Source: Paramoeba atlantica (taxonomy: Eukaryota > Protista > Discosea). Taken from it: 64,000 nucleotides of DNA. The stretch covers positions 1 through 64,000 of the forward strand of contig CDRNVI010000173.1 in NCBI GenBank assembly GCA_977017575.1, written 5' to 3'. Below are positions 861 to 63,634 of the stretch, one piece after another. Position 1 is the first letter of the stretch, and each line of letters begins with the position of its first letter. Position numbers and translations under genes: made by a program. The notes beneath the pieces were generated by a model, which had not been told where the DNA came from, searched no databases, and was given only the letters and a program-made list of their open reading frames with translations.

Positions 861-904
861 TTTTTTCAGAGGTTTAAACAGTTTTGAATCGTCTTTTCGG
901 GCCC
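861..904 (-). promoter_or_regulatory. Conserved ~44-bp spacer element, copy 1 of 10
   Basis: TTTTTTCAGAGGTTTAAACAGTTTTGAATCGTCTTTTCGGGCCC, between divergent copies 0 and 1. Regulatory function is inferred. Confidence 0.55.
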
Positions 905-1571
905 TTTCTTTTTTCTTCCAGGTTTTTTCTGTTTCCTTTTCTTCCCTCTCTCTCTCGTTTTTCGTTTGGACCTCTTTAGTTGCCTGTGTCTTCGTTTTGG
1001 ACCTTTCTCTCTCTCTCTCTCTCCTTTTTCCCAAGAAGATTCTCTCTTCTCTTCTCTTTTTTTTTCAGACTCTTTTACTCAAAGTCTCCGCCTCCTCTCT
1101 TCCCTCTTGCTAAAAGAAGAAGAGTTTCTTCTCTTCTTCTTCTTTCTTCAACTTTGATCTTGTACCTTCTGAAGTGTTTTTCTTTTCTGTTTTTTGTCTC
1201 AATTTGAAAAAAAAAGTGGCAGAAAAAGCTCTCTCTCTCTCTCTTCTCTCTCTCTCTTCTCTCTCTTTGATTGGGAATTGGTTTTCTCCATTGTTCCCAC
1301 TTCATTTTTGTGTTTTGTTTTGGCAGCAGTCTCTCTCTCTTCTCTCTTTGTGCGTGGGATAGTTTTGGTTCAATTTTTTCTTTTTTTCCCTTTTTTTCTT
1401 TTTCCTTTTTCCCTATTTCTTTTTGAGGTGTTTTGTTTGTTCTTTTGTCTTTTGTTTTTTTGAAAAATGTTTGTTTTTTTCTTCTCTTTTCTTTTAAAAA
1501 TTGTTCATTGTTGCTTTTTCTTCTTTTTTTGTTGTTGATTGATCTTTTTTCCCACACAGAGAGACAAAAAA

Positions 1572-3821
1572 ATGAGCGAAAATAGAGGAAAGAGAAAGAG
1601 AGGAGAATCAGAATTAGAAACTGAGAAAAAGAGAAAAACCAAAAGAGGAAAGAAAGAGAAAGAAGATCAAACAACAGAGTGTGATGATGTTGTTATAATT
1701 GAAGAAGAAGATGATGATGATGATGAAAGAGAAAGAAGAAGTGAGGAGGTTCTTGGAAAGAGAGAACAACAAAATGAAGAAGGAGAAGAGAGAGAAAGAG
1801 AAGAAGAGGTGATGAAGAGAAGAAGAAAGGAAGAAGAAGAGAAAAAGAAAAGATTTGAATGTGGAATATGTTTGGAGCTGATGAGTTGGGAAAAAGAACC
1901 AAGGTTGTTACCTTGTTGTGCTCTTTCTTTTTGTTCTCTTTGTCTCAACAAACTCTTTCTTCTTCAAAATCCTTCTTCCTCCTCTTCCTCTTCTTCTTTC
2001 TCATATCTTTCTTCCTCTTCCTCTTCCTCTTCTTCTTCTATGAGAGGAGTGAAATGTCCAGTTTGTCGAGAAATGAACGAATGTGAAAGCGTTGAAACAC
2101 TTTCAATGAATTATTTGATTCCAGAAACGATTGATGTTCTTCTTTCTTCAAATTTGATCTCTTTCTCCAATCAATCAGGTTTTTTCTCCATTTTTTTGAA
2201 CTCTCACTTTCTTTCTTTCTTTCCTCTTTTTTTTGAAAGAAAGCTATTTCAAATTGTTGAAAAACATATTTTTTGAACAGGAGATGGTGGATCAGAATGT
2301 GTGAATTTCGAAACGTGTGGAGAACGAACTCAAATGTATTGTTCTGATTGTAAAATGTTTATTTGTGATTCTTGTGATCCATCTCACACTTCAACTATTT
2401 TCACTCAAAATCACAAACGATCTGAAAGAGACGGTGTTGAGGGAGGTGGAAGAAGAAGAAGATTGGAAGAGGAGGGGGTGATGGGAGTGATGGGATTGGA
2501 GAATTTGAAGAAGAGAGAATGTTCAAAACACCCATCTGAAACAATTTGTGGATATTGTTTTCAATGTTCTTCTTTTGTTTGTACTCGTTGTATTCTTGAA
2601 ACACATGATGATCATAATGAGAAAGTGAAATCAATTGAAGAAAGTATTTTGGAGAAGAGGGATGAAGTTGTAAAGATTGGAGATAAATTGGAGAGAAGAT
2701 TGATTTTGATTGAGAGGAAAAGAAAAAGAATTGAAAAAGAAATGAAAGAATTAGAAGAGAAATTAGAAAAGAAAAGAATTGAAAAGAAAGAAATAGAATT
2801 GGAGAAAGAAGATTTGAGAATCAGAAAAGATTCAATTATTCGTTTATCCAACACACCAACAACAACAACAACAACAACTGATTGTGATGTTTCTCTCTTT
2901 TTTGATGATCAACTTTTTTCAACTCTTCTTCAAACTGCAAATGATATTGTTTCTGAAGGAGGTGTTGTTGATTTACCAAAACCAAAGAAAGGAGTGATTT
3001 GTTGTGATGATTCTTTTCGTTTTGTTTCTTCTTTTCCTTTGAAGAATTATCCTTATGGAGTGAGTGTGAACAGTGATGGGAATATATTTATTTGTGAAGG
3101 GTTGGTGAGTGGATTGAAAGTGAGAGATAAAGAAGGAAATGAGATGATTGAATCAACAATTCAGAAAACAATTGATTCACTTCAGTTGGAACCTGTTGAT
3201 GTTTCAATTGGATTGAATGATCAAATTGTTGTTCTTGATTATTCTCAAGATTCTCAGAGAGTTGTAATCTTAAACAAAGAAGGAGAATTGATCAAATCTT
3301 TTGGATCAAAAGGTTCTCAAGATGGTCAGTTTTATGAACCACATGGTGTGGATGTAGATGAAGAAGGTAGAATTATTGTTGTTGACTCTGGAAATGATCG
3401 AATTCAAGTGTTTGATAATGATGGATCTTTTCTTCGTTCTTTTGGTTCAAAAGGTTCTTCTGAAAGTCAATTTAATGAACCAAACAGTGTTGTAGTTGAT
3501 AGAGATGGGAATATTGTTGTTTGTGATACTTGGAATCATCGGATTCAAGTGATGGATATTGAAGGGAATTTTATTCGATTTCTTGGAGGTTCAGGTGATT
3601 CTCAATTCGATTGTCCAAAAGGTGTTGATGTGGATGGGGAAGGTAGAATTGTTGTTTGTGATTCAGAAAATGAAAGAGTGAGTGTGTTTGAGAAAGATGG
3701 AACATTTCTTTTTTCGTTTGGTGAAGATCGCATGAATTATCCTTCTGGGGTTGTTGTTGATTCATTTGGAACAATTATTGTTTCAGATTTTGACAATAAG
3801 TCAATTGAGTTGTGGAAATAA
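1572..3821 (+). CDS. TRIM-NHL paralog copy 1 (RING-Bbox1-Bbox2-coiled coil-6xNHL), ~715 aa
   Basis: Exons 1572-2178 and 2281-3821, with a 102-nt phase-1 GT..AG intron that restores frame. B-box1 CVNFETC..CSDC..CDSC..H..H, B-box2 CSKH..CFQC..CTRC..HDDH, six NHL repeats. Confidence 0.92.
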
Positions 3822-4653: not shown

Positions 4654-4697
4654 GGGTCCGAAAAGACGATTCAAAACTTTTTAAACCTCTGAAAAAA
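4654..4697 (+). promoter_or_regulatory. Conserved ~44-bp spacer element, copy 2 of 10
   Basis: GGGTCCGAAAAGACGATTCAAAACTTTTTAAACCTCTGAAAAAA, upstream of copy 2. Confidence 0.55.
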
Positions 4698-5378
4698 ATA
4701 TCACAAAAACACACCAAAAACTTTTACTTTTTCGTTTTTCCCTCTCCTCTCTTCTCTCTCTCTTCTCTTCTCTTCTCTCTCTTTTCTCTCTCTCATTCAT
4801 TTGGGCTCTCTTTACCTTGTTTTGGGCTCTCTCTCTCCTTTCATTTTGGGGATTTTTCGTGTCACCATCTTTGCAATTTCTTCTTCTCTTTTGGAATCTC
4901 TTTCTTCTTCTCTTTTGGATCTCTCCTCTCTCCTTTTTTTCGTTTGTTTGGAGATCTCTTTCTTTCTCTTGGTGTTTCATATTTTGGAGCCTTTTTGGGT
5001 TATATTGTTTTTGTCTCTTTTCTTCTTTTCTCTTCACTTGCAAAAGAAGAAAAGCTTTCGTGACTTTTTGGGAGATGTTTGTATTTTTACTTTTCTTTCT
5101 TTTTTCTCCTTCCCATTTTTGAAAAAATTGGTAGAACCTCTTTCTCTCTCTCTCTCTTCTTTCTCTCTCTCTCTGTAGGACATTCTCTAAGAATTGGTTC
5201 TCTCTCCATTGTTCCTCTTTGTATTTCTTTTGTTTTGGGGGGGGGAGTACCAGTCTCTTTTGTGTGTGTGATAGTTTTTTGGTTTGATTTTTTCTTTTTT
5301 TCCTTTTTATTTCTTATTTTTTGTTGTATTGATTGATTTCTTTTTCCCACACACAGAGAAGAAGAGAAGAGAGACAAA

Positions 5379-7606
5379 ATGAGTGAAAAAAGAGGAAAGA
5401 GAAAAAGAGAAAGAGAAACAGAATTAGAAACTGAGAAAAAGAGAAAAACCAAAGGAGGAAAGAAAGAGAAAGAAGAAGAAGATGTTGTTGTTGAAATTGA
5501 AGATGACAATGATGAAAAAGAACAAAGGGAAAGAAGAAATGAGGATGTTCTTGGAAAGAGAGAACAACAAGCGGGACAAAATGAAGGAGAAGAAGGAGAA
5601 AGAGAAAGAGAAGAAGTGGTGATGAAAAGAAGAAGAAAGGAAGAAGAAGAGAAAAAGAAAAGATTTGAATGTGGAATATGTTTGGAATTGATGAATTGGG
5701 AAAAAGAACCAAGGTTGTTACCTTGTTGTGCTCTTTCTTTTTGTTCTCTTTGCCTCAACAAACTCTTTCTTCTTCAAAATCCTTCTTCTTCTTCTCCTTC
5801 TTCCTCTTCTTCTTCTTCTTCTTGTTCCTCTTTGAAAGGAGTGAAATGTCCAGTTTGTAGAGAAATGAACAAATGTGGAGCGATTGAAACACTTTCGATG
5901 AATTATTTGATTCCAGAAACGATTGATGTTCTTCTTTCTTCAAATTTGATTTCTTTCTCCCACCAAACAGGTTTTCTTTCTGTTTTTTGAGAGAAAGTTA
6001 TTTCAAAATTGAAAAAACATGTTTTTTGAAAAACAAAACAACAGGAGATGGTGGATCAGAATGTGTGAATTTCGAAACGTGTGGAGAACAAACTCGAATG
6101 TATTGTTCCCAATGCAACATGTTTATTTGTGATTCTTGTGATCCATCTCACACTTCTTCTCTTTTCACTCAAAATCACAAACGATCTGAAAGAGATGGTG
6201 TTGAGGGAAGAGGTGGAAGAAGAAGAAGATTGGAAGAGGAGGGAGGGGTGGTGGGAGTGATGGGATTGGAGAATTTGAAGAAGAGAGGATGTTCAAAACA
6301 CCCATCTGAAACAATTTGGGGATATTGTTTTCAATGTTCTTCTTTTGTTTGTGGTTGTTGTATTCTTGAAACACATGATGATCATAGAAAGAAAGTGAAA
6401 TCGATTGAAGAAAGTATTTTGGAGAAGAGAAAGGAAGTTGTAAAGATTGGAGATAAATTGGAGAAAAGATTGATTTTGATTGAAGAAGAAAGAAAAAAGA
6501 TTGAAAAAGAAATGAAAGAATTAGAAGAGAAATTAGAAAAGAAAAGAATTGAAAAGAAAGAAATAGAATTAGAGAAAGAAGATTTGAGAATAAGAAAAGA
6601 TTCAATTATTCGTTTATCCAACACACCAACAACAACAACAACAACAACAACTGATTGTGATGTTTCTCTCTTTTTTGATGATCAACTTTTTTCAACTCTT
6701 CTTCAAACTGCAAATGATATTGTTTTTGAAGGAGGTGTTGTTGGATTACTCAAACCAAAGAAAGGAGTGATTTGTTGTGATGGTGGTGGTGATTCTTTTC
6801 GTTTTGTTTCTTCTTTTCCTTTGGAGAATGTATCTTGTGGAGTGAGTGTGAATAGTGATGGGAATATTTTTATTTGTGAAGATGAGGGTGGATTGAGAGT
6901 GATAGATAAAGAAGGAAATGAGATGATTGAATCAACAATTCAGAAAACAATTGATTCACTTTATTTGGATCCTGTTGATGTTTCAATTGGATTGAATGAT
7001 CAAATTGTTGTTCTTGATTGTTCTCAAGATTCTCGTAGAGTTGTAATATTAAACAAAGAAGGAGAATTGATCAAATCTTTTGGATCTAATGGTTCTGAAG
7101 ATGGTCAGTTTAATAGTTCGTGTGGTGTGGATGTAGATGAAGAAGGTAGAATTATTGTTGCTGATACTTTGAATCATCGAATTCAAGTGTTTGATAATGA
7201 TGGATCTTTTCTTCATTCTTTTGGTTCAGAAGGTTCTTCTGAAAGTCAATTGAATGAACCTCACGGTGTTGTAGTTGATAGAGATGGGAATATTGTTATT
7301 TGTGATACTTGGAATCATCGAATTCAAGTGATGGATATTGAAGGGAATTTTATTCGATGTTTTGGAACAAAAGGTTCAGGTGATTCTCAATTGAACGAGC
7401 CAGAAGGTGTTGATGTTGATGGGGAAGGTAGAATTGTTGTTTGTGATTCAGGAAATGGAAGAGTGAGTGTGTTTGAGAAAGGTGGAACATTTCTTTTTTC
7501 GTTTGGTAAACCTCATGTGGTGAATCCTCTTGGGGTTGTTGTTGATTCATTTGGAACAATTATTGTTTCAGATTATGAGAAAAAGTCAATTGAATTTTGG
7601 AAATAA
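5379..7606 (+). CDS. TRIM-NHL paralog copy 2, ~717 aa
   Basis: Exons 5379-5970 and 6045-7606 (74-nt phase-1 intron); all domains intact. Confidence 0.92.
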
Positions 7607-11186: not shown

Positions 11187-11962
11187 TTTTTTGTCTCTCT
11201 GTGTGGGGAAAAGAGATCAATCAACAATAAAAAAAGAAGAAAAAGCAACAATGAACAATTTTTAAAAGAAAAGAGAAGAAAAAAACAAACATTTTTCAAA
11301 AAAACAAAAGACAAAAGTACAAACAAAACACCTCAAAAAGAAATAGGGAAAAATGAAAAAGAAAAAAAGGAAAAAAAAGAAAAAATTGAACCAAAACTAT
11401 CCCACGCACAAAGAGAGAAGAGAGAGAGAGACTGCTGCCAAAACAAAACACAAAAATGAAGTGAGGAACAATGGAGAAAACCAATTCCCAATCAAAGAGA
11501 GAGAAGAGAGAGAGAGAAGAGAGAGAGAGAGAGCTTTTTCTGCCACTTTTTTTTTTTCAAATTGAGACAAAAAACAGAAAAGAAAAACACTTCAGAAGGT
11601 ACAAGATCAAAGTTGAAGAAAGAAGAAGAAGAGAAGAAACTCTTCTTCTTTTAGCAAGAGGGAAGAGAGGAGGCGGAGACTTTGAGTAAAAGAGTCTGAA
11701 AAAAAAAGAGAAGAGAGAATCTTCTTGGGAAAAAGGAGAGAGAGAGAAAGAGAAAGGTCCAAAACGAAGACACAGGCAACTAAAGAGGTACAAACAAAAA
11801 GGAGAGAGAGGGAAGAAAAGGAAACAGAAAAAACACAAAAGAAAAAAGAAAGGGTCCAAACGAGAGGAGGAAGAGAAGAGAGAAGAAAGAGACAGAGAGA
11901 GAAAGGTCCCAAACGAAGACACAGAAGAGAGAGAGAGGAAAAACAAAAAACAAAAAAAAAGG

Positions 11963-12006
11963 TTTTTTCAGATGTTTAAAAAGTTTTGAATCGTCTTTTC
12001 AGACCC
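11963..12006 (-). promoter_or_regulatory. Conserved ~44-bp spacer element, copy 3 of 10
   Basis: TTTTTTCAGATGTTTAAAAAGTTTTGAATCGTCTTTTCAGACCC, between divergent copies 3 and 4. Confidence 0.55.
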
Positions 12007-12529
12007 TTTCTTTTTTCTTTTGTGTTTTTTCTGTTTCCTTTTCTTCCCTCTCTCTCTCGTTTTTCGTTTGTCCTCTTTCTTTGACTATCTTGTCTCTTTT
12101 ATCTCTTTTTGAGTTTTTGAACCGCTTTGGAGAAAAAAGGATTCCTTCTTTTTTTTTTTTTCTTTTTCCTCTCTTCTCTCTTCTGTGTCTTCGTTTGGGT
12201 CTCTCTCTCTGTCTCTTTCTCTTCTTCTCGATCCCTTCTTCTTCTTTCCTTCTTTCCTTCCTCTTCTCAGTCTTCTTCTTCTCTCTCTCTTTCTCTTCTC
12301 TCTTGTTTTCTCACAACCCAAGAAAAAATTGGACGTCTTTGGATAGTTGTCATAGATTTTGCGACTCTCTCTTTCTCTCTTTTGTCCTTTCCTGTCTTTT
12401 TGAGAGATGTTTGTATTTTTCTTTTCTTTTCTTTTCTTTTGATTCATCCACCTATTTTTAAACTCCCTTTTCTTCTTGTTGTTGTTGATTTTTATGTTGT
12501 TGATTGATCTCTTTTCCCAGAGACAAAAA

Positions 12530-18295: not shown

Positions 18296-19170
18296 TTTGT
18301 TTTCACGTCCCACCCAACAACAAAAATAGAAACAACTTTTGAAAAGAGAAGAACAAACAAGTAAAATAGATGAAAGATCTCTGGGTGAAACAATAATAAT
18401 CAATAACCACAACACACACAAACAAAAAGAGAACAAACTGATAAAACACACACACATAAAAACAAGAAAAAAGAAGATTATCAAAATAAAAATAAAAATA
18501 AAAACCTTTTTCTCAAAATTTCCAAAAAAAAAGAGAGAGGATACAAAAAAACGAGCAGTAAAAGAGGGAGAAGAAGAAAACGAAAATGTCCAGAGACTCC
18601 TCCTAAATCACAATCCACAACACCCCCACACAACAACAAAAGAAAGCCTGAATAATTCACAAAAGAGAGAGAGAAAAACCTTGTCAACAAAAGATCCAAA
18701 AAAGAGAAAGAGAGAAAGAGAGGAGAAAGAGAAAAAGAGAAGAGAGGAAAACACAAAAATGAAAAATGGCAAAAAATGGATAAAAAAATGAGAAAAAAGA
18801 AGACTCTGAAAGAAATCAAAACTGTGAGGCAAATCAGAACCAAAATGAAATGTCCAAATGAAATACAAGAGAGAGAGAAGAGAGAGAGAGAGGAGCACAA
18901 AACAGAATCTCAGCAAAGAAGAGAAACAGCAGAAAGATGGGAAGAAGAGAAGAAACAAAAATAAAAGAGGATGTCGTCCAAAAAGAGGAACAACAAAAAC
19001 TCAAAAAAAGAGATTCAACGAGAACTGAAATCAAGAGAGAGACAGAGACAGAACAAAAGGAAAAAAAAACAGAAAGAAAGAAAGAACAAGAGAAGAGACA
19101 AAGAAAGAAGAACAAAAGAACAAGAGAGACAAAGAAAGAAGAAAAACAGAAAAAAAGAGAAAAAAAGGAA

Positions 19171-19214
19171 GGGTACGAAAAGAGGATTCAAAACTTTTTA
19201 AACCTCTGAAAAAA
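19171..19214 (+). promoter_or_regulatory. Conserved ~44-bp spacer element, copy 4 of 10
   Basis: GGGTACGAAAAGAGGATTCAAAACTTTTTAAACCTCTGAAAAAA, between divergent copies 5 and 6. Confidence 0.55.
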
Positions 19215-20276
19215 ATATCACAAAAACACACCAAAAACTTTTTCTTTTCGTTCTTCCCTCTCTTCTCTCTTCTCTCTCCTTTCTCTCTCTCTCTCTCATT
19301 TCGTTTCTTGTGCCTCTCTTTTTGGGGTTGTTGTTGATCAATCTTTGAGGGTTTTTGGTTTTTGCGCTCTCTCTTCTCTCTCTTCTCTCTCATTTCGTTT
19401 CTTGTGCCTCTCTTTTTTGGGGTTGTTCTTTTTTGAGGTTTTTGGTTTTTTGGGATCTCATTCTCTCTCATATTTTCGTTTGGATTTTTCTCTTTCTTCT
19501 TCTTCTTCTTCTTCTTCTTTGGTGGTGTTTTCATTTTTGGAGAATCTCTTCTTTGAGAGTTTTTGTTTTTGGGAGAGAGAGAGACTCTTTTTCTCTTCTC
19601 TTCTCTTTCTTTGAAACGAAAAATCCTTTCCTCACTTTTTGAGAGAGAGATGTTTGTATTTTCATTTTTCTTCTTTTTTCTCTTTTTTTTTATCTCAATT
19701 TATTGAAAAAACAAAATTATCAGAAAACCTCTTTCTCTCTCTCTTCTTGTGTCTTTGTGGGTTTGTGTGGGAGACATCTCTATTTTCTTGATTGTTCACT
19801 CATTTCATTTTTGTTTTGGGGTATCAGCAGAGTCTCTTTGAGTGGGGATACTTTTTGGTTTCATTTTCATTTTTCATTTTTCATTTTTCATTTTTCATTT
19901 TTCATTTTTCAATTTTCATTTTTTTTCATCCATTTCTTTTGATTTTTTATTTTGTGTGTGATGATTTTTTTGATTGTTTTTTTCCCTCTCTCACATTTCT
20001 TTTCTTTTCTTTCAGAGAGGATATCTTTCTCCCTCTTCCTCTCCATCTCTCTCTTGTTTGAACAATCACATTTTGATCCTCTTCTCTCACACTCTTTGCA
20101 CTCTATCTCTTTTGAGTTCATTCTTTTGGGAAGGTGTTTTTGTTTGTTCTTTTTCTTTGATCTTTATTTTCTCAAATTTGGTGAAAGAGATTGTTTGTTT
20201 TTTTTCTTTTTCTTTTCTTTTCTTTCTTTTTTTGTTGATTGATTTCTCTTTTCCACACAGAGAGAAGAGAGACAAA

Positions 20277-22586
20277 ATGAGTGAAAAAAGAGAAAAGAGA
20301 AAGAGAGGAGGAGGAGAACAAGGAATAGAATTAGAAAGTGAGAAAAAGAGAAAAACCAAAAGAGGAAAGAAAGAGAAAGAAGATCAAACAACAGATTGTG
20401 GTGATGTTGTTGTTGTTGTGATTGGAGATAATGATGATGATGAAAAAGAACAAAGAGAAAGAAGAAGTGAAGATGTTCTTGGAAAGAGAGAACAACAAGT
20501 GGGACAAAATGAAGGAGAAGGAGAGGAAGAAAGAGAAAGAAAAGAAATGGCGATAAAAAGAAGGAGAAAGGAAGAAGAAGAGAAAAAGAAAAGATTTGAA
20601 TGTGGAATATGTTTGGAATTGATGAGTTGGGAAAAAGAACCAAGGTTGTTACCTTGTTGTGGTCTTTCTTTTTGTTCTCTTTGTCTCAACAAACTCTTTC
20701 TTCAAAATCCTTCCTCTTCTTCTTCTTCTTCTTCCTCTCCTTCTTCTTCCTCTTCTTCTCCCTCTTTGAAAGGAGTGAAATGTCCAGTTTGTAGAGAAAT
20801 GAACGAATGTGAAAGCGTTGAAACACTTTCGATGAATTATTTGATTCCAGAAACAATTGATGTTCTTCTTTCTTCAAATTTGATTTCTTTATCCCAACAA
20901 CCAACTTCAGGTTTCTCCGTTTTTTTCTCCATTTTTGAACTCTAACTTTCCTCTCTTCCTCTCTTTTTTTCTTTTTTTTCTTTTTTTGAGAGAAAGGTTA
21001 TTTCAAAAGTTGAAAAAACATGTTTTTTGAAAAACAAAACAACAGGAGATGGTGGATCAAAATGTGCGAATTTTGAAACGTGTGGAAAACAAACTCGAAT
21101 GTTTTGTCCTCTTTGTAACATGTTTATTTGTGATTCTTGTGATCCATCTCACACTTCAACTATTTTCTCTCAAAATCACAAACGATCTGAAAGAGATGGT
21201 GTTGAGGGAGGAGGTGGAAGAAGAAGATTGGAAGAGGAGGGAGGGGTGGGAGTGATGGGATTGGAGAATTTGAAGAAGAGAGAATGTTCAAAACACCCAT
21301 CTGAAACAATTTGTGGATATTGTTTTCAATGTTCTTCTTTTGTTTGTACTCGTTGTATTCTTGAAACACATGATGATCACAGAAAGAAAGTGAAATCAAT
21401 TGAAGAAAGTATTTTAGAGAAAAGGGATGAAGTTGTAAAGATTGGAGATAAATTGGAGAAAAGATTGATTTGGATTGAGAGGAAAAGAAAAAGGATTGAA
21501 AAAGAAATGAAAGAATTAGAAGAGAAATTAGAAAAGAAAAGAATTGAAAAGAAAGAAATAGAATTGGAGAAAGAAGATTTGAGAATCAGAAAAGATTCAA
21601 TCATTCGTTTATCCAACACACCAACAACAACAACAACAACTGATTGTGATCTTTCTCTCTTTTTTGATGATCAACTTTTTTCAACTCTTCTTCAAACTGC
21701 AAATGATATTGTTTTTGAAGGAGGTGTTGTTGGATTACTCAAACCAAAGAAAGGAGTGATTTGTTGTGATGGTGGTGGTGATTCTTTTCGTTTTGTTTCT
21801 TCTTTTCCTTTGGAGAATGTACCTTTTGGAGTGAGTGTGGACAGTGATGGGAATATTTTTATTTGTGAAGAGGGATTGAGTGTGAGAGATAAAGAAGGAA
21901 ATGAGATGATTGAATCAACAATTCAGAAAACAATTGATTCACTTCAGTTGGAACCTGTTGATGTTTCAATTGGATTGAATGATCAAATTGTTGTTCTTGA
22001 TCATTCTCAAGATTTTCGAGTTGTAATCTTAAACAAAGAAGGAGAATTGATCAAATCTTTTGGATCAAGAGGTTCTGAAGATGGTCAGTTTTATGAACCA
22101 TGTGGTGTGGATGTGGATGAAGAAGGTAGAATTATTGTTGCTGACTCTGGAAATGATCGAATTCAAGTGTTTGATAATGATGGATCTTTTCTTCATTCTT
22201 TTGGTTCATTTGGTTCTTCTGAAAGTCAATTTAATCAACCAAACGGTGTTGGAGTTGATGGAGATGGGAATATTGTTATTTGTGATTCTGGGAATCATCG
22301 GATTCAAGTGATGGATATTGAAGGGAATTTTATTCGATGTTTTGGAACAAAAGGTTCAGGTCCTTCTCAATTCAATGGTCCAAAAGGTGTTGATGTTGAT
22401 GGGGAAGGTAGAATTGTTGTTTGTGATTCAGGAAATGGAAGAGTGAGTGTGTTTGAGAAAGATGGAACATTTCTTTTTTCGTTTGGTGGAGATCGCATGA
22501 ATTATCCGAATGGGGTTGTTGTTGATTCATTTGGAACAATTATTGTTTCTGATTGGGAGAAGAAGTCAATTGAATTTTGGAAATAA
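20277..22586 (+). CDS. TRIM-NHL paralog copy 6, ~724 aa
   Basis: Exons 20277-20910 and 21046-22586 (135-nt phase-1 intron containing an in-frame TAA). Confidence 0.92.
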
Positions 22587-25625: not shown

Positions 25626-25669
25626 TTTTTTCAGATGTTTAAAAAGTTTTGAATCCTCTTTTCGTACCC
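25626..25669 (-). promoter_or_regulatory. Conserved ~44-bp spacer element, copy 5 of 10
   Basis: TTTTTTCAGATGTTTAAAAAGTTTTGAATCCTCTTTTCGTACCC, between divergent copies 7 and 8. Confidence 0.55.
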
Positions 25670-26074: not shown

Positions 26075-28338
26075 ATGAGTGGACAACAAGGAAAGAGAAA
26101 GAGAGAAGTGGTGAGAACTGAGGGTGAGGAGGGGAAAAGAAAATCGAAAAGAGAAAAGAAAGATCAAATTACTCATGATGATGGGGATGTTATCATTGGT
26201 GGAGTTGAGAATGATGATGATGAAAAAGAAGAAAGAGAAAGAAGAAGTGAGGATGTTCTTGGAAAGAGAGAACAAGAAATGGGACAAAATGAAGGAGAAG
26301 AAAATATAGAAGGAGAAGAAGAGGTGATAAAAAGAAGAAGAAGAGAAGAAGAAGAGAAAAAGAAAAGATTTGAATGTGGAGTTTGTTTGGAGTTGATGAG
26401 TTGGGAAAAAGAACCAAGGTTGTTACCTTGTTGTGGTCTTTCTTTTTGTTCTCTTTGTCTCAACAAACTCTTTCTTCTTCAAAATCCTTCCTCTTCTTCC
26501 TCCTCTTCTTCCTCTCCCTCTCCCTCTCCCTCTGCTACCTCTTCTTGTTCCTCCTTGAGAGGAGTGAACTGTCCAGTGTGTCGAGAAGTGAATGAATGTG
26601 AAAGCGTTGAGACACTTTCGATGAATTATTTGATTCCAGAAACGATTGATGTTCTTCTTTCTTCAAATTTGATCTCTTTCTCCAATCCATCAACTTCAGG
26701 TTTTACTTTTTGCTTTTTTCTTTTCTCTTTGGAGTTGGAGGAAAATTGACTGACTTCCTTTTTTTGAACATAAAAATAGAAGAGGAAGTTGTCCCAAGAT
26801 GTGTAAATTTCGAAACGTGTGGAGAACAAACTCGAATGTATTGTTCTGATTGTAAAATGTTTATTTGTGATTTTTGTGATCCATCTCACACTTCAACTAT
26901 TTTCTCTCGAAATCACAAACGATCTGAAAGAGGTGGTGTTGAGGGAGGTGGAAGAAGAAGAAGATTGGAAGAGGAGGGAGGGGTGGTGAGAGTGGGATTG
27001 GAGAATTTGAAGAAGAGAGAATGTTCAAAACACCCATCTGAAACAATTTGTGGATTTTGTTTTCAATGTTCTTCTTTTGTTTGTACTCGTTGTATTCTTG
27101 GTACACATGATGATCACAGAAAGAAAGTGAAATCAATTGAAGAAAGTATTTTGGAGAAGAGAAATGAAGTTGTAAAGATTGGAGATAAATTGGAGAGAAG
27201 ATTGATTTTGATTGAGAGGAAAAGAAAAAGAATTGAAAAAGAAATGAAAGAATTAGAAGAGAAATTAGAAAAGAAAAGAATTGAAAAGAAAGAAATAGAA
27301 TTAGAGAAAGAAGATTTGAGAATCAGAAAAGATTCAATTATTCGTTTATCCAACACACCAACAACAACAACAACAACAACAACTGATTGTGATGTTTCTC
27401 TCTTTTTTGATGATCAACTTTTTTCAACTCTTCTTCAAACTGCAAATGATATTGTTTCTGAAGGTGGTGTTGATGGATTATTCTCAAAACCAAAGAAAGG
27501 AGTGATTTGTTGTGATGGTGGTGGTGATTCTTTTCGTTTTGTTTCTTCTTTTCCTTTGAAGAATGAACCTTTTGGAGTGAGTGTGAACAGTGATGGGAAT
27601 ATTTTTGTTTGTGAAGAGGGTAGATTGAGAGTGAGAGATAAAGAAGGAAATGAGATGATTGAATCAACAATTCAGAAAACAATTGATTCACTTTATTTGA
27701 ATCCTGCTGATATTTCAATTGGATTGAATGATCAAATTGTTGTTCTTGATTGGTCTCAAGATTTTCGTAGAGTTGTAATCTTAAACAAAGAAGGAGAATT
27801 GATCAAATCTTTTGGATCAAGAGGTTCTGAAGATGGTCAGTTTTATGAACCATATGGTGTGGATGTAGATGAAGAAGGTCGAATTATTGTTGCTGATACT
27901 TGCAACCATCGAATTCAAGTGTTTGATAATGATGGATCTTTTCTTTGTTCTTTTGGTTCAAAAGGTTCTTCTGATGGTCAATTTCATGAACCAAACAGTG
28001 TTGTAGTTGATAGAGATGGAAATATTGTTATTTGTGATTCTGAGAATCATCGGATTCAAGTGATGGATATTGAAGGGAATTTTATTCGATGTTTTGGAAC
28101 ATTTGGTTCAGGTGATTCTCAATTAAGTTATCCACAAGGTGTTGATGTGGATGGGGAAGGTAGAATTGTTGTTTGTGAAGGAAGAAATCGGCGAGTGAGT
28201 GTGTTTGAGAAAGATGGAACATTCCTTTTTTCATTTGGTCAAAATCACATGAAGTTTCCTAATGGGGTTGTTATTGATTCATTTGGAACAATTATTGTTT
28301 CTGATGGGCGGAATGAGTCAATTGAATTTTGGAACTAA
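26075..28338 (+). CDS. TRIM-NHL paralog copy 8, ~727 aa
   Basis: Exons 26075-26699 and 26780-28338 (80-nt phase-1 intron, TAG acceptor). Confidence 0.92.
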
Positions 28339-28982
28339 TTGAAAAGAGGAGGAGGGGTTTGTTTTTTTATTCTTTCCTTTTCTCTTTCTTTCTTTTTCTT
28401 TTCATTTATGAAAATGTGGATTCTTCTTCATTTTCAATTCGTCTTTTTTCTGTTTTTAGAGGAAATTAATGAAGAAATTTTATTCTCTCTTTTATCCTTT
28501 CCCTCCTCTTCCTTTTTAGTCTTTGGTGCGATCTTCATCTTCCTAATCTTCTTCAAAAAATTTCGATTCGATTTCTCCTCCAAACTTTTCTTGATTTCTC
28601 TTCCAGTATTTTTAACAATGACTTTTCCTTTTTTCTCGTTTTTAGAGGAAATTGAGAGAAAGAAATTTCCCCCTCCTTTTAGTTTTTCTCTCAGTTGTGG
28701 TGTGGTGGTCTTCTTCTTTTCCAATCCCTTCTTCTTCTACAATTTCGTTTTTTATCCTTCAGAGTCTCTCAATTTGGCGTTTCTTTTTGTTTTTGATGTG
28801 CAACTTGCGGAAAGAGAGGAAAACAAGAGAGGTGGGTGAGTTTTGCAATTGTGAGAACAACTTTTCTTTTCTCTGAATCTGTTTTTTCTCATGATCACGT
28901 TTCACCACCTTTGGCCACGCCTTTCTCTTTTGGATTTTCTTCTCGGGATTCTTCTTGATTATCTTATCAACAAAGGGAAGGA

Positions 28983-29795
28983 ATGGCCAATGAGGATGCT
29001 TCTTGGGCAAAAGTGAAAGAAGGAGTGAAGGAAAAGAAGAGTGTTCTTTTGCTTGAAGCTCTTCCGAGAATTCAAGCGAACTCAGACTGGGATTCTATTG
29101 ATACACTGGAGAACAGTTGGTTTTGTTCTTTTCTTTTTCTTTCTGGTTTCTCTCGCGCAGGATAATAACGAAAAACAGGTGATTCTTACCACAGGAACAT
29201 TCGAAAAAGAAGGGGATCCATTCTTTGATGAGAACCAAAAGATTGTTGAGTTGACCAAATCTGTTTTCAACTCTTGGGTCAACCACCAATCAACCTCTCA
29301 CCCAGAATTCTTGGCCTCCATTTATTGGATGCTGGTAATTTTTTCCTCTTTCTCTTTTTCTTTTTTTGTGATTCATTCCAATCACAATCAGGGGCGTGTA
29401 AATCACACAACATATGAACCTGAAGAGGCTCGGAAATATTATGAACAATCACTGAAGATTTGTTTGAGTGATTTGCACAGCACTCAGAGCACTCGGTTGC
29501 GTTGTGTTCTTTATTATTCAATGTTTCTTTGGGATGAAGAAGAGGAAGACAAAGCAATCAAAATGACCAAGGAGGGGTTTGATAGTGCGATTGGAGAGTT
29601 GGACACGATTGATGAAGACTCATATAAAGAAGCATGTGTGTCATTGCAACTCATGAGAGATAACTTAACCATCTGGGTGGAGGTTTGACCTCTTCTTTTT
29701 TTGTTGGTTCTTTTCTTTTTCTCACCCCTTTCATCTCTCAGACGAAAGGGAAACCAAGGTCCAGGAAAGTGAATATCAAACCTGCAAAAAAATAA
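28983..29795 (+). CDS. Divergent 14-3-3-like protein, ~205 aa
   Basis: LHSTQSTRLRCVLYYSMF and AIGELDTIDEDSYKEACVSLQLMRDNLTIW match 14-3-3 helices 7-9 (LPPTHPIRLGLALNFSVF and [26 protein letters not shown]). Exons are 28983-29115 (tentative), 29195-29334 (5' end tentative), 29392-29682 and 29742-29795. Confidence 0.75.
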
Positions 29796-29876
29796 ATTGC
29801 TTCTCTTTTCCTGCTTTTCTTCGAGTCAAGACTCATCAGAACCACCAGCCTCTCTCTTTGCAGGTTTGAGATTCAC
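29769..29876. repeat. 20-bp inverted repeat (19/20 match, 68-nt spacer) spanning the 3' ends of the 14-3-3-like and LUC7-like genes
   Basis: GTGAATATCAAACCTGCAAA (29769-29788) pairs with TTTGCAGGTTTGAGATTCAC (29857-29876). Confidence 0.85.
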
Positions 29877-30657
29877 CATCTACCATAAAAATTAAACAAC
29901 CACCACCAAAAAAAAAACAAAGAAAAACAAGACAAAAATGAAAAGAAAACCTTCAGTTCTTTAATCGTTTCACAAATTCGAACAAAACCAAGATGATGTT
30001 TTCCTTGTAGATGACTTTGAATTCGATCTTCTGAGTCGTTTGAAACCATTATCCCTCCACATTCCTCACAAACTTTCAGAGTGAGAGCATCAGGTTGATC
30101 CTGTGAAAAAGCTCTCAATTTTTTGAAAAAATGTAGAAGCGGCTCAAGAACGAGAAAAAAAAAACCTACCTTGTCTTCTCCGATTCTTTCTTTGATTTGC
30201 TTGACCCTTTGAAGAATCAAAGTCAGTTTTTTCCTTTCAAAAACAAAAGAAGAAAAAGGGAAAAAACAAAGAAGAAAAAAACTTTCGATCTCGAACTTTA
30301 ACGAGAGCCTCGAGTTCTTGAAGAAAATCAAACTCATAACCGTATTCGGTGGTTTTTCCAAGTGCAAGCATCTGTTGATATTCTTGTTGAAGAAAATGAT
30401 CATGTTTTTTCAAACAAGGCTCTAAGACAAAAAAAAAGGGGAGCCCCTCAGAAACAGAAACAGAAAGAAGAAGAAACAACAAAAGGCAAACCGAGCGCGC
30501 TCTTTGTATTGGCAAAAAGTTCAGGAAGACAGAATCCACACAAATAGTTTTTACAAACATCGGGATCATCGATCCTGAGAACCTCATTCGTTTCAAGAAG
30601 GTCTCCAGTTCTGTCGATCCCCATCAACTGGTCCAACAACACACGATTTTCGTCCAT
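29826..30657 (-). CDS. LUC7: LUC7-family U1 snRNP-associated protein, compact (~181 aa)
   Basis: Begins with LLDQLMG. ZnF1 is C-x7-C-x14-C-x3-H (VCKNYLCGFC..PCLKKH) and ZnF2 is VCEECG..H..GKHHLGF. Exons 30657-30492, 30421-30283, 30206-30170, 30100-29951 and 29879-29826 sum to 546 nt in frame. Confidence 0.85.
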
Positions 30658-30954
30658 TTGAAAAAACAAACAGAAAAAGAAATAGAAAAAAGCTAAAAAA
30701 AGAACTCTAAAAAATGGCCAATGGCTCTTTTTTTTGTTTGCTTTTTTCACTTTTCTCTTCTCCAAGACTTTGGTTTTTTCTTCTTTTTTTTTGACCGCTT
30801 CTTTATTCTCGACTCGACGAGCTTTTCTCCCACAAAATTATCCCCCTTCTCTTGATTCTTTGTTTCTGATGTTTGTATTTTTCTTTTCATATGTTTTTTC
30901 TTCTCTTTTCTGACCAACAATTCTTGATTCAGATCTTTTTTTGTTGATATCTGA

Positions 30955-31389
30955 ATGAGTGAGGGAAAGAGAAAGAGAGAAGGAGTCGAAAGTGAGAGTG
31001 AGGGAAAGAAAAGAAAAATTGAAAGAAAAAGTGATGACGAAAAAGAACGAAGAGATCAAACAACAGATTGTGATGTTGTTGATGTTGATGTGATTGAAGA
31101 AGAAGAGGATGATAAAATGGAACAAAGAGAAAGAAGAATTGAGGATATTCTTGGAAAGAGAGAACAAGAAGTGGGAGGAAATGAAGGAGAAGGAGAAGGA
31201 GAAAGAGAAAGAGAAGAAGTAGTGGTGAAGAGGAGAAAGGAAGAAGAAGAGAAAAAGAAAAGATTTGAATGTGGAATATGTTTGGAATTGATGAGTTGGG
31301 AAAAAGAACCAAGGTTGTTACCTTGTTGTGCTCTTTCTTTTTGTACTCTTTGTCTCAACAAACTCTTTCTTCTTCAAAATCCTTCCTCT

Positions 31390-31421
<32 letters not shown>

Positions 31422-34796: not shown

Positions 34797-34840
34797 GGGT
34801 ACGAAAAGAGGATTCAAAACTTTTTAAACCTCTGAAAAAA
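34797..34840 (+). promoter_or_regulatory. Conserved ~44-bp spacer element, copy 6 of 10
   Basis: GGGTACGAAAAGAGGATTCAAAACTTTTTAAACCTCTGAAAAAA, between copies 10 and 11. Confidence 0.55.
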
Positions 34841-36067: not shown

Positions 36068-36098
<31 letters not shown>

Positions 36099-41878: not shown

Positions 41879-41921
41879 GGGTCCGAAAAGACGATTCAAA
41901 CTTTTTAAACCTCTGAAAAAA
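41879..41921 (+). promoter_or_regulatory. Conserved spacer element, copy 7 of 10 (43 bp, one base shorter)
   Basis: GGGTCCGAAAAGACGATTCAAACTTTTTAAACCTCTGAAAAAA, between divergent copies 12 and 13. Confidence 0.55.
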
Positions 41922-42585
41922 CCTTCTTTTTTTTTTCTTTTTCCTCTCTTCTCTCTTTCTGTGTCTTCGTTTGGGACCTTTCTCTCTGTCTCTTTCTCTT
42001 CTTCTCAATCCCTTCTTCTTCTTTCCTTCTTCCCTCCCTCTCTCAGACTCTCTTGTTTTCATTTGTACCTCCCTTTCTCTCTTTCTCTCTTAGTTTCTAT
42101 TTCCACTCTCTCTCATTCACATTTATTTTTTGTCCCACTCTCTTCTTCTCTCTCTCTCTCTTTCCTCCTCTTTTCTCTGGGTGCATTTACCTTTTTGGAC
42201 CCAAAAACATCTCTCTCTTAATTTCCCCTCTTTCTCCTTCTCCTTCTCTTTCTCTTTCTCAATCTCTTTCTCTCTCTCCTGTTCACGTTGAATCCCTTTC
42301 TTTTCTTCTTTCGTTGGTGCCTTCGTTTTGGAAAACCTTTCTTTTGGATTTGAACCATTTTGTTTGCGAATTGAGTTTTCTGTGTGTGTGGAGGGATTTT
42401 TAGTTTTCCATATTTTTCTTTTTTCATTTTTTTTCTTGAGGTGTTTTGTTTTGTTTCTTTTGTCTTTTATCTTTTGTGTGTTCACAAAAAACAAACACTT
42501 CTTTTTTTTTAGAAATTGTTTCACTTCTCACTTTTCTTCCTTTTTTTGTTAGATTGATTTATCTCTTTTCCAACACAGAGACAAA

Positions 42586-43503
42586 ATGAGTGAAAATAGA
42601 GGAAAGAGAAAGAAAGGAGGAGAAACAGAATTGGAAACTGAGAAAAAGAGAAAAACCAAAAGAGAAAAGAAAGAGGAGGAAGGAGATCAAACAACAGATC
42701 GTTGTGGTTCTGAAGGAGAAAGAGAAAGAGAAGAAGTGGCGATGAAAAGAAGAAGAAAGGAAGAAGAAGAGAAAAAGAAAAGATTTGAATGTGGAATATG
42801 TTTGGAGTTAATGAATTGGGAAAAAGAACCAAGGTTGTTACCTTGTTGTGCTCTTTCTTTTTGCTCTCTTTGTCTCAACAATCTCTTTCTTCTTCAAAAT
42901 CCTTCCTCTTCTTCTTCTTCCTCTTCCTCTTCTTCTTCCTCTATGAAAGGAGTGAAATGTCCAGTGTGTTGCGAAATGAACGAATGTGAATGCGTTGAGG
43001 CACTTTCGATGAATTATTTGATTCCAGAAACGATTGATGTTCTTCTTTCTTCAAATTTGATCTCTTTCTCCAATCAATCAACTTCAGGTTTTTACTTTTT
43101 GTTTTTTTCCTTTCTCTTTTGGAGGAGAATTGACTGACTTCCTTTTTTAAACATAAAAATGAGAAGAGGAAGTTGCCCCAAGATGTGTGAATTTCGAAAT
43201 TTGTGGAGAACAAACTCGAATGTATTGTTCTGATTGTAAAGTCTTTATTTGTGATTCTTGTGATTCTTCTCACTCTTCTGCGATTTTCACTCAAAATCAC
43301 AAACGATCTGAAAGAGATGGTGTTGAGGGAGGTGGAAGAAGAAGAAGATTGGAAGAGGAGGGAGGGGTGATGGGAGTGATGGGATTGGAGAATTTGAAGA
43401 AGAGAGAATGTTCAAAACACCCATCTGAAACAATTTGTGGCTATTGTTTTCAATGTTCTTCTTTTGTTTGTACTCGTTGTATTCTTGGTACACATGATGA
43501 TCA
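42586..43503 (+). pseudogene. TRIM copy 13: RING-Bbox1-Bbox2 only, 3'-truncated and fused to inverted copy 14
   Basis: Exon 1 is 42586-43087; probable GAG acceptor at 43163. Homology stops at ...GTHDD (43503). The frame reads on antisense to copy 14 until 43765. Confidence 0.85.
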
Positions 43504-45195
43504 AGAACAACAATTTGATCATCCAATCCAATTGAAACATCAACAGGTTCCAACTGAAGTGAATCAATTGTTTTCTGAATTGTTGATTCAATCATCTCAT
43601 TTCCTTCTTTATCTATCACTTTCAATCCACCCTCTTCACAAACAAAAATATTCCCATCACTGTTCACACTCACTCCATAAGGTGCATTCTTCAAAGGAAA
43701 AGAAGAAACAACGCGAATCGAATCACCACCACCATCACAACAAATCACTCCTTTCTTTGGTTTGAGTAATCCATCAACACCTCCTTCAAAAACAATATCA
43801 TTTGCAGTTTGAAGAAGAGTTGAAAAAAGTTGATCATCAAAAAAGAGAGAAATATCACAATCAGTTGTTGTTGTTGTTGTTGTTGTTGGTGTGTTGGATA
43901 AACGAATAATTGAATCTTTTCTGATTCTTAAATCTTCTTTCTCCAATTCTATTTCTTTCTTTTCAATTCTTTTCTTTTCTAATTTCTCTTCTAATTCTTT
44001 CATTTCTCTTTCAATTCTTTTTCTTTTCTTTTCAATCACAATCAATCTTTTCTCCAATTTATCTCCAATCTTTACAACTTCATCCCTTTTCTCCAAAATA
44101 CTTTCTTCAATTGATTTCACTTTCTTATTGTGATCATCATGTGTACCAAGAATACAACAAACACAAACAAAAGAAGAACATTGAAAACAATATCCACAAA
44201 TTGTTTCAGATGGGTGTTTTGAACATTCTCTCTTCTTCAAATTCTCTAATCCCATCACTCCCACCACCCTCTCCTCCTCCAATCTTCTTTTTCCACCTCC
44301 CTCAACACCATCTCTTTCAAATCGTTTGTGATTTCGAGAGAAAATAGAAGAAGAGTGAGATGGATCACAAGAATCACAAATAAAGACTTTACAATCAGAA
44401 CAATACATTCGAGTTTGTTCTCTGCATGTTTCAAAATTTACACATCTTCTTTGAACGGCTTCTCCTGCTTTGTTTTTTTGTTGATAAAAAACGAAAAACT
44501 AAGTCAGTGAAGGTGAAATAACTTTTTCTCAAAAAAAAACGGCAAGAGTAAAAAAAAGAAAAAAGAAAAAGAAAAAAATCCAAAAAAAATCATTGGAGGA
44601 AAAGTAAAAAACCTGAAGTTAATTGTTGGGAGAAAGAGATCAAATTCGAAGAAAGAAGAACATCAATCGTTTCTGGAATCAAATAATTCATCGAAAGTGT
44701 TTCAACACTTTCACATTCGTTCATTTCTCGACACACTGGACATTTCACTCCTCTCAAAGAGGAAGAAGAAGAGGAAGATGGGGAAGAAGAAGAAGAAGAG
44801 GAAGAGGAAGAGGAGGAAGGAGGATTTTGAAGAAGAAAGAGATTGTTAAGACAAAGAGTACAAAAAGAAAGACCACAACAAGGTAACAACCTTGGTTCTT
44901 TTTCCCAACTCATCAACTCCAAACATATTCCACATTCAAATCTTTTCTTTTTCTCTTCTTCTTCCTTTCTTCTTCTTTTCATCATCTCTTCTTCTCTTTC
45001 TCTTTCTCCTTCTTCTTCTTCTTTTCCAAGAACATCCTCACTTCTTTTTCGCTGTTCTATTTCATCATTCTTCCCAACTACAACAACATCATCAAGATTA
45101 CTTTGTTCTTTCTTTCCTCTCTTTGTTTTTCTTTTCCCCCCCTCACTCCCACTTCTCACCACTTTTCTCTTTCTCTTTCTTCTTTGATCCCTCAT
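43497..45195 (-). pseudogene. TRIM copy 14: RING-Bbox-coiled coil plus ~1.5 NHL blades, 3'-truncated and fused to copy 13
   Basis: Exons 45195-44613 and 44464-43497. Homology ends at QIVVLDH. The frame reads on antisense to copy 13 until 43287. Confidence 0.85.
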
Positions 45196-46004: not shown

Positions 46005-46048
46005 TTTTTTCAGAGGTTTAAAAAGTTTTGAATCCTCTTTTCGTACCC
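46005..46048 (-). promoter_or_regulatory. Conserved ~44-bp spacer element, copy 8 of 10
   Basis: TTTTTTCAGAGGTTTAAAAAGTTTTGAATCCTCTTTTCGTACCC, between divergent copies 14 and 15. Confidence 0.55.
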
Positions 46049-51969: not shown

Positions 51970-52013
51970 GGGTCCGAAAAGACGATTCAAAACTTTTTTA
52001 ACATCTGAAAAAA
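51970..52013 (+). promoter_or_regulatory. Conserved ~44-bp spacer element, copy 9 of 10
   Basis: GGGTCCGAAAAGACGATTCAAAACTTTTTTAACATCTGAAAAAA, between divergent copies 16 and 17. Confidence 0.55.
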
Positions 52014-55938: not shown

Positions 55939-57507
55939 TCAAAATGATTTCCAAAATTCAATTGACTTATTCTCATAATCTGAAACAATAATTGTTCCAA
56001 ATGAATCAATAACAACCCCATTAGGATCTCTCATATGATGTTGACCAAACGAAAAAAGAAATGTTCCATCTTTCTCAAACACACTCACTCTTCTATTTCC
56101 TGTATCACAAACAAAAATTCTACCTTCCCCATCCACATCAACACTTCCCGGACAATCGAATTGAGAATCACCTGAACCTTCTGTTCCAAAACATCGAATA
56201 AAATTCCCTTCAATATCCATCACTTGAATCCGATGATTCCCCACATCAGAAATAACAATATTCCCATCTCTATCAACTACAACACCATAAGGTTGATCAA
56301 ATTGACCTTCAGAAAAACCAAAAGAACCAAAAGAACGAAGAGAAGATCCATCATTATCAAACACTTGAATTCGATCATTTCCAGAGTCAGCAACAATAAT
56401 TCGACCTTCTTCATCCACATCCACACCACATGGTCGGTGAAACTGACCATCTTCAGAACCACTTGATACAAAAGATTTGATCAATTCTCCTTCTTCGTTT
56501 AAGATTACAACTCGATAACAATCTTGAGAATGATCAAGAACAACAATTTGATCATTCAATCCAATTGAAACATCAACAGGTATCAACTGAAGTGAATCAA
56601 TTGTTTTCTGAATTGTTGATTCAATCATCTCATTTCCTTCTTTATCTCTCACTTTCAATCCACCCTCACCTTCACAAATAAAAATATTCCCATCACTGTT
56701 CACACTCACTCCATAAGGTTGATTCTTCAAAGGAAAAGAAGAAACAACACGAATCGAATCACCACCACCATCACAACAAATCACTCCTTTCTTTGGTTTT
56801 GAGAATAATCCAACAACAACTCCTTCAGAAACAATATCAGTTGCAGTTTGAAGAAGAGTTGAAAAAAGTTGATCATCAAAAAAGAGAGAAACATCACAAT
56901 CAGTTGTTGTTGTTGTTGGTGTGTTGGATAAACGAATGATTGAATCTTTTCTGATTCTCAAATCTTCTTTCTCTAATTCTATTTCTTTCTTTTCAATTCT
57001 TTTCTTTTCTAATTTCTCTTCTAATTCTTTCATTTCTTCTTCAATCTTTTTTCTTTTCTTTTCTATCAAAATCAATCTTTTCTCCAATTTATCTCCAATC
57101 TTTACAACTTCACTCCTTTTCTCCAAAATACTTTCTTCAATTGATTTCACTTTCTCATTATGATCATCATGTGTTTCAAGAATACAACGAGTACAAACAA
57201 AAGAAGAACATTGAAAACAATATCCACAGATTGTTTCAGATGGGTGTTTTGAACATTCTCTTTTCTTCAAATTCTCCAATCCCATCACTCCCACCACCCC
57301 CTCCTCCTCCAATCTTCTTCTTCTTCCACCTCTTCCCTCAACACCATCTCTTTCAGATCGTTTGTGATTTCGAGTGAAAATGTTTGAGGTGTGAGATGGA
57401 TCACAAGAATCACAAATAAACATTTTACAATCAGAACAAAACATTCGAGTTTGTTCTCCACACGTTTCGAAATTCGCACATTCTGATCCATCTCCTGTTG
57501 TTTTGTT
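55939..57507 (-). pseudogene. TRIM-NHL copy 18: exon 2 intact, exon 1 (RING) and promoter missing
   Basis: Exon 2 runs 57494-55939, preceded only by the intron's last 13 nt (AACAAAACAACAG). It then abuts copy 19. Confidence 0.85.
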
Positions 57508-57563
57508 ACCTTCTATATTGTGGTGATGAACAACAAAATGAAGGAGAAAGAGAAGAAGAGGTG

Positions 57564-62911: not shown

Positions 62912-63590
62912 TTGTTTTCACTTCCAACCCCCAACAACAAAAAAAAAAAGAAACAACTTTTGAAAAGAGAACAAAAACACAATAAAATAGATGAAGATCT
63001 CTGTGAACAATAAAGAATCAATAACCACACACACAAAAACAAGAAAAAGAAGAAAATAAAAACCTTTTCTCAAAAAAACTCAAAAAAAGAAAGATCTCTC
63101 CCAACAAATCCAACAACAACAAAGAATGGTAAAAAAAAACACTCTCTCTCTCTCCAAAAAAAGAGGACAAAAAACTAGCAGTAGAAGAGAGAGAGACAAG
63201 AAAACGAAAATGTGGAGAGAGACTCCTCCTCAATCACAACTCACAACACACAAAAGAAAGCCTGAATAATTTCACAAAAAGAGAGAAAAAGAGAGAAAAA
63301 GTCTGTCAACAAAAAGAGACTACACACAAAAGAAATAAAAGAGAAAGAGAGAAAAGAGAGAGACCCAAGAAGATGGAAGAAGAGACGGAATAAGGGAAGA
63401 AACAAACAAAAACGAGAGAGAGAGAGAGGGAAGAAGACAGAAGAAGTGCAGATGAAGAAGGACAAGACTCTCCAAGAGACGGAAGAAGAAGAGGCGAAAG
63501 AAAGGAAGAAACAAACAAATCAAGAGAGCCCCAAAAAAAACTCTGTCTCAAGAAAAAAAGAAAAACAGAAAAATGAGAGAAAAAAAGAAA

Positions 63591-63634
63591 GGGTCCGAAA
63601 AGAGGATTCAAAACTTTTTAAACCTCTGAAAAAA
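63591..63634 (+). promoter_or_regulatory. Conserved ~44-bp spacer element, copy 10 of 10
   Basis: GGGTCCGAAAAGAGGATTCAAAACTTTTTAAACCTCTGAAAAAA, upstream of copy 20. Confidence 0.55.

Follow-up and report, generated by a model that had tools for sequence, protein, structure and literature searches.

A conserved element at the centre of divergent TRIM-NHL-like gene pairs of Paramoeba atlantica as a candidate core of a bidirectional transcription-start region

Introduction

Trypanosome-type organisms transcribe their protein-coding genes mostly in long series whose start regions are poorly defined; sequence-specific promoters have been recognised only recently and only in Trypanosoma brucei, and shared start signals have rarely been pinned down. 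The RNA polymerase II (Pol II) promoters of T. brucei lie in divergent strand-switch regions (PMC11796357; PMC12227686), GT-rich dispersed promoters are described in the strand-switch regions of trypanosomatids (PMC12227686), and the recent identification of sequence-specific core promoters in T. brucei is credited to Cordon-Obras 2022 where that work is cited in PMC11796357. Here we describe a 44-base-pair (bp) element that recurs between divergent genes in a 64,000-nucleotide (nt) stretch of DNA from Paramoeba atlantica (assembly GCA_977017575.1, contig CDRNVI010000173.1, positions 1 to 64,000 of the forward strand; hereafter the window). It had first been noticed from the letters of the window alone (the original prediction), as a candidate control element or recombination site. 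The element lies exactly at a switch in strand composition in the middle of pairs of TRIM-NHL-like genes, and in our view the chances are roughly even that it forms the core, defined by its sequence, of a bidirectional transcription-start region for these pairs.

Results

The element and its copies in the window

Genes that encode two B-boxes, a coiled coil and NHL repeats (Pfam NHL, 8.4e-21; zf-B_box, 1.9e-06) are densely arrayed in the window, and a RING-like cysteine motif was seen by eye upstream of the B-boxes in the translations. About 20 copies and fragments of this TRIM-NHL-like family were mapped by tblastn, with natural open frames as protein queries and exons not joined into a spliced model. 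Neighbouring copies mostly point in opposite directions, which makes head-to-head and tail-to-tail spacers follow each other in turn. A blastn-short search of the window found the 44-bp element at each of the ten predicted positions, with 93-100% identity and a chance expectation of 0. Scans that allowed mismatches only recovered nine of the ten, because the copy at 41879 carries a 1-nt deletion.

To describe the element with its surroundings, 26 distinct copies of the approximately 40 present genome-wide were aligned together with their flanks. The constrained block extends over about 58 bp and reads GAAAAAAAG(G/A)AAGGGT(A/C)CGAAAAGA(G/C)GATTCAAAACTTTTTAAAC(C/A)TCTGAAAAAA. Variant A is defined by GGGTAC..GAG and is followed by an extension of about 24 nt beginning ATATCAC, while variant B is defined by GGGTCC..GAC, followed by CCTTCTTTTT. 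Five window copies (4654, 19171, 34797, 46005 and 63591) carry the extension ATAT(C/T)ACAAAAAC(A/T)CACCAAAAA in the alignment, which is the number given in the original prediction. The copies in the window are as follows.

861..904, minus strand: element copy 1, variant B, reads GGGCCC..GAC
4654..4697, plus strand: element copy 2, left half B, right half A, extension to about 4722; tandem context, left partner gene deleted
11963..12006, minus strand: element copy 3, variant B; purine-side flank duplicated as a perfect 55-nt inverted repeat
19171..19214, plus strand: element copy 4, variant A, GGGTAC..GAG, extension to about 19251
25626..25669, minus strand: element copy 5, recombinant with left half A and right half B
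34797..34840, plus strand: element copy 6, variant A with extension; of the left partner gene, a 3' fragment alone is present
41879..41921, plus strand: element copy 7, variant B with 1 nt missing from its A run
46005..46048, minus strand: element copy 8, variant A with extension
51970..52013, plus strand: element copy 9, variant B
63591..63634, plus strand: element copy 10, recombinant that combines GGGTCC and GAG; its right half is A with extension

Distribution across the genome and between spacer types

The genome (45.7 Mb in 248 contigs) was scanned for the motif, as the original prediction had proposed, and 39-40 copies were found. All lie inside arrays of the RING/B-box/NHL family, on the eight contigs that carry these arrays (C139, C150, C173, C175, C204, C213, C215 and C228). 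Of the copies, 32 match the 19-nt core exactly and 6 differ from it at one position; matches with two mismatches elsewhere in the genome stay at control level. The profile search was likewise all-or-none: full elements scored 53-62 bits and everything else less than 9 bits, with no decayed copies and none upstream of outlier genes. The TRIM-NHL-like family has at least 87 matches genome-wide, and no element copy was found on the other contigs, where its more diverged members lie; C163, C164, C176, C180 and C201 are contigs with such members. An occurrence of one copy per spacer, only inside the arrays of one family, is not that of the end of a mobile element such as a miniature inverted-repeat transposable element (MITE) or a short interspersed element (SINE). 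In metagenome contigs, scans for the exact pattern and for a protein pattern returned no relatives in other organisms.

We then compared spacer types in the window and in fifteen further 10-kb pieces of the genome. The element is present in 17 of 21 divergent spacers, in none of 26 convergent spacers and in one of ten tandem spacers. The sole tandem case is the copy at 4654, whose minus-strand partner has been deleted and where the upstream gene is followed by 365 nt of ordinary 3' flank. The divergent spacers that lack the element all adjoin 5'-truncated or fragmentary genes, and where one partner has been lost, the element remains with the surviving intact gene, on either side. The predicted absence from tail-to-tail spacers thus holds throughout the census, as does, in the window, the absence upstream of the outlier gene at 30928 and from the deleted spacer between copies 18 and 19 of the gene family (57507/57528). 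Two points correct the head-to-head setting given in the original prediction: the copy at 4654 is in a tandem context and the copy at 34797 faces only a 3' fragment on its left. The deleted spacer is described by the following feature.

57507..57528, no strand: head-to-head junction; the spacer and both 5' gene parts are deleted, and no element is present

The element marks a switch in strand composition

With the spacers turned so that the element reads forward, nearly every copy has a minus-strand gene on its left and a plus-strand gene on its right. Purines make up a fraction of 0.8-1.0 over the 150 nt left of the element, and of 0.04-0.1 at positions +70 to +140 to its right. The element is therefore the exact point of a strand-composition switch, and the sense strands of both diverging genes are pyrimidine-rich beside it. 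Tandem Repeats Finder (TRF) reported repeats of the AG type left of the element, repeats of the CT type right of it and no repeat across the element itself. Distances between the element and the flanking ATGs range from 143 to 1062 bp, which is wider than the 370-1060 bp first given. Copy 4 illustrates the two arms.

18690..19170, no strand: purine-rich arm (AG/AAG repeat) on the left side of copy 4; the leftward gene has a pyrimidine-rich sense strand here
19252..20233, no strand: pyrimidine-rich arm (CT/TTC repeat) right of copy 4, putative outron of the rightward gene

A location exactly at the switch could also be that of a chromatin or replication landmark, that is a boundary, a nucleosome-excluding element or a replication origin. 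The element is rich in A/T tracts, a crude home-made AA-wedge sum peaks at it, and divergent switch regions of Trypanosoma cruzi have been associated with intrinsic curvature (PMC5679330). However, the wedge peak also appears at periods 14 and 16, so is not specific to 10.5 bp, and its shuffle P values run from 0.008 to 0.6. An origin every 4-9 kb would be unusually dense, and restriction to one gene family speaks against a general chromosomal landmark. We regard this explanation as quite improbable.

The two arms of a spacer are partly inverted copies of each other. At copy 3, a perfect 55-nt inverted repeat (11802-11856 / 12002-12056, the two halves 145 nt apart) comprises the purine-rich flank and the first five bases of the element, which suggests a recent inverted duplication or a template switch at the spacer centre. 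The motif AAAGG(G)TCC(A/G)AAACGA, which resembles the first 20 nt of the element, occurs in both orientations in variant-B spacers. Around variant A, alignments of the left gene usually begin no earlier than query residue 129 and those of the right gene at residues 18-76, so that the orientation of the element is tied to that of the asymmetric pair unit as a whole.

In every copy, pairing of the two arms is predicted (37-85 pairs) and leaves the element in the loop region. The element could thus be the loop of a long GA/CT hairpin transcript, as a small-RNA precursor, or a small non-coding RNA, and weak matches to plant microRNA precursors, far below threshold and caused by the GA/CT hairpin, would be in line with this. 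Yet two upstream regions in inverted arrangement will pair in this way automatically. The element itself folds no better than shuffled sequences on either strand (z -0.25 to -1.07), and its variable positions 5, 14 and 34 do not form compensating pairs. Across the whole window, Rfam at the gathering score and ARAGORN for transfer RNA (tRNA) returned nothing, the best relaxed Rfam match reaching 35.7 bits against 85. The small RNA that the original prediction had listed among its alternatives is therefore not supported, and we consider an RNA product very unlikely.

Other assignments were also tried and rejected. On the reverse strand, GTTTTGAATCC, compared by eye, matches a tRNA-like B-box at 9 of 11 positions of what we take to be the consensus, with a T in place of a C that is presumably critical, and variant B breaks the match. 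For a C/D small nucleolar RNA, CTGA is present and no C box was seen upstream by eye; neither C/D nor H/ACA boxes were seen by eye in the element. A coding element was discarded as well: variant A has no ATG, and the overlapping open reading frames are of low complexity and inconsistent in strand and frame.

Constraint on the element

Apart from about 100 nt beside each ATG, the central element is the only constrained complex sequence of the spacer. The 20-mers of the element are found again in 24 of 25 other copies, whereas those from most of the remaining spacer are found in 0-5. Mean pairwise identity is 96.6% over a 28-bp core and 93% over the 44 bp; windows of exon 2 have a median identity of 85% and a maximum of 96%, and introns reach 46% with gaps counted or 70% with gaps ignored. 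Per-site diversity is 0.031 in the 28-bp core and 0.051 over the 44 bp, compared with 0.099 at four-fold synonymous sites (53 sites), and resampling places the element below these sites with P = 0.002 (28 bp) and P = 0.012 (44 bp). In the first 300 nt of the 3' flanks, diversity is 0.37, and the lowest 28-column window is at 0.24. The element is therefore better conserved than the rest of the spacer, than four-fold sites and than 3' flanks, as opposed to being no better conserved than its neighbourhood. These values describe constraint among paralogues, because no relative in another species was found.

Exchange inside the element

The markers on the left of the element (flank type, position 5 and position 14) are tightly linked to one another. 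Left markers and right markers (position 34, extension and right-arm motif) occur in all four combinations in a four-gamete test, which indicates that exchange has taken place within the invariant 19-mer block at least 2-3 times. The rare recombinants are W_25626, W_4654 and W_63591. They fit ordinary homologous recombination through the only stable homology of the spacer, with no need for a dedicated recombinase.

The recombination site put forward in the original prediction is retained in part: markers have been reassorted by homologous exchange inside the element, while a site-specific target is unsupported for want of conserved dyad symmetry. If the element were such a target, a recombinase would invert or excise cassettes and so shuffle a hypervariable family, and both the occurrence of copies in both orientations along the contig and the exchange within the element would follow. 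However, inspection by eye showed no conserved dyad-symmetric core, the 4-bp GAGG/CCTC dyad being intact in variant A only; orientation tracks the type of the flanking gene, so that whole pair units and not the site have been inverted; and ordinary homologous exchange already accounts for the recombinants. A site-specific recombinase target is highly unlikely.

The main competing explanation needs neither a recombinase nor a regulatory role. The element would be a passive homology island, the sole stretch of the spacer free of repeats, and would owe its uniformity to gene conversion or unequal exchange among array members while the arms diverge by slippage. The reassortment of left and right markers inside the invariant block, with its three recombinants, is what this would produce; four-fold sites are fairly uniform (0.10) relative to 3' flanks (0.37), which suggests concerted evolution; and a tree of 35 coding segments is star-like and does not separate left from right genes. 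On the other hand, the core is 2-3 times less diverse than four-fold sites (P = 0.002) and about 12 times less diverse than the 3' flanks, which are not repetitive either. Introns within the presumably converted genes are far more diverged, and a sharp-edged island of 44-58 bp in about 40 copies would be hard to keep without selection. We consider a purely passive island unlikely.

Spliced-leader setting

The 3' half of a spliced leader of the kinetoplastid/diplonemid type has 793 matches in the genome, against 2 for the reversed control; most read CAGTTTCTGTACCTTGTTG, with examples on C1, C2, C3 and L024, and the window contains none. The search pattern follows what we take to be the T. brucei leader, and the match count supports this lead. 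Most ATGs of these genes are preceded at 11-25 nt by a conserved pyrimidine tract ending CACAG (...TTTTCCCACACAG), a putative trans-splice acceptor, for example at the following position.

5325..5381, plus strand: pyrimidine tract and CACAG, then the ATG at 5379; candidate spliced-leader acceptor

In addition, at L024:1500-1520 a leader-like sequence follows an A run and stands directly upstream of an ATG-started frame, an arrangement that resembles a retrocopy.

The gene family

Each gene of the family has two exons, and its GT-AG intron varies between copies in length and sequence. The introns fall into several unrelated-looking classes of about 80-190 nt (e.g., window 5950-6040 and 20880-21030, L011 and L021); some contain a GC-rich insert (...GACCACCCACCC...), and the flanking exon ends are conserved. 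In exon 2 of 36 members from the window and L009-L023, differences are 0.086 at codon positions 1+2 and 0.105 at four-fold sites. Because positions 1+2 differ almost as often as four-fold sites, the family appears to be under very relaxed or diversifying selection.

The outlier subfamily, represented in the window by the gene at 30928-33186, has its own element-free upstream region of 2.3-2.6 kb (window 28333-30927). This region is 94-97% identical in four places (the window, L020:4039-6428, L012:3321-5474 and L017:8721-10000). It contains open frames that match the C-terminal part of a 14-3-3 protein (29041-29685, plus strand) and part of LUC7 (29876-30403, minus strand), which would be either captured gene fragments or intron-split genes. 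Elsewhere in the window, a tail-to-tail fusion lies at 43497-43513, where the copies at 42520-43513 (plus strand) and 43497-45093 (minus strand) share 17 nt and neither retains its NHL end.

Discussion

The 3' end of each gene faces a neighbour in convergent orientation. Both members of a pair must therefore have their sense transcription start in the divergent spacer, barring antisense read-through across a neighbour. The only constrained complex sequence of that spacer, beyond the vicinity of the ATGs, lies exactly at the strand switch, which leads us to interpret this sequence as the core of a bidirectional start region. The shared promoter or enhancer of the original prediction is partly supported, being in keeping with the position at the pair centre, the restriction to one family and a constraint stronger than that on synonymous sites; from these we infer that the element may act as a promoter.

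Under this start-region reading, the 44-58-bp core would recruit the initiation machinery, and Pol II would leave it in both directions across the GA/CT arms, which are pyrimidine-rich on the sense strands. The arms would be outrons, removed on addition of the spliced leader at the pyrimidine-tract/AG site 11-25 nt before the ATG. If the arms are discarded in this way, both their variability next to a fixed core and the long distance between element and ATG would be explained.

Several observations weigh against a bidirectional start region. The element is asymmetric and present once per spacer, while the strand-switch regions of T. brucei reportedly hold two opposed directional promoters. Some apparently intact members lack an element, namely the outlier subfamily and three genes that adjoin rearranged spacers. 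Conservation is measured among paralogues only, which also exchange sequence, and synonymous sites are just 2-3 times more diverse than the element. Since these sites are much more uniform than the flanks, concerted evolution operates in the arrays and may explain part of the uniformity of the element.

A stronger form of the proposal is that the element is a discrete, family-specific Pol II promoter that gives each of about 40 pairs its own bidirectional start, with transcriptional and possibly selective or mutually exclusive control, and that the same block serves as the crossover point at which left and right genes are reassorted. We hold this combination to be improbable.

What the arrays offer is about 40 natural replicates of a short, sharply bounded and strongly constrained element, at the place where transcription of single genes must begin. 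If the element is a start region, gene-level Pol II initiation would be readily testable in a lineage thought to be without gene-level promoters, and the wiring of expression in a rapidly diversifying gene family would be laid open. If it is not a promoter, it is a clean homology island maintained by recombination amid microsatellite DNA.

Comparison with known systems

The Pol II promoters of trypanosomatid strand-switch regions are similar in arrangement. In both cases the site lies between divergent units, in a genome with a kinetoplastid-type leader, at a switch in strand composition and far from the coding start, and the intervening RNA is presumably discarded by trans-splicing. The trypanosomatid spacers are 5-10 kb long and hold two opposed promoters, whereas those described here are 0.8-2 kb long, serve single-gene units of one family and contain one asymmetric element each. 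Published kinetoplastids are also described as almost intron-free (PMC7859406), in contrast to the TRIM-NHL-like genes with their GT-AG intron.

Head-to-head bidirectional promoters, such as those of divergent histone pairs, share with this element a short conserved block that lies midway between divergent paralogues and is duplicated with the pair. The block studied here differs in its distance of 150-1000 bp to the ATGs, across which the microsatellite DNA evolves fast.

Variant multigene families can have family-specific upstream elements, as in the ups promoters of Plasmodium var genes and the expression-site promoters of trypanosome variant surface glycoprotein (VSG) genes. There, as here, a highly uniform non-coding element accompanies each member of a diversifying family. 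However, var and VSG genes encode surface antigens under mutually exclusive expression, whereas the TRIM-NHL-like proteins are of an intracellular type.

Finally, the spacers can be compared with the large palindromes of ampliconic sex chromosomes, which have a central unique spacer. Both combine inverted gene-bearing arms, a short non-palindromic centre and exchange between copies. In ampliconic palindromes the arms are homogenised, whereas here the opposite is seen: the centre is best conserved and the inner arms are most variable.

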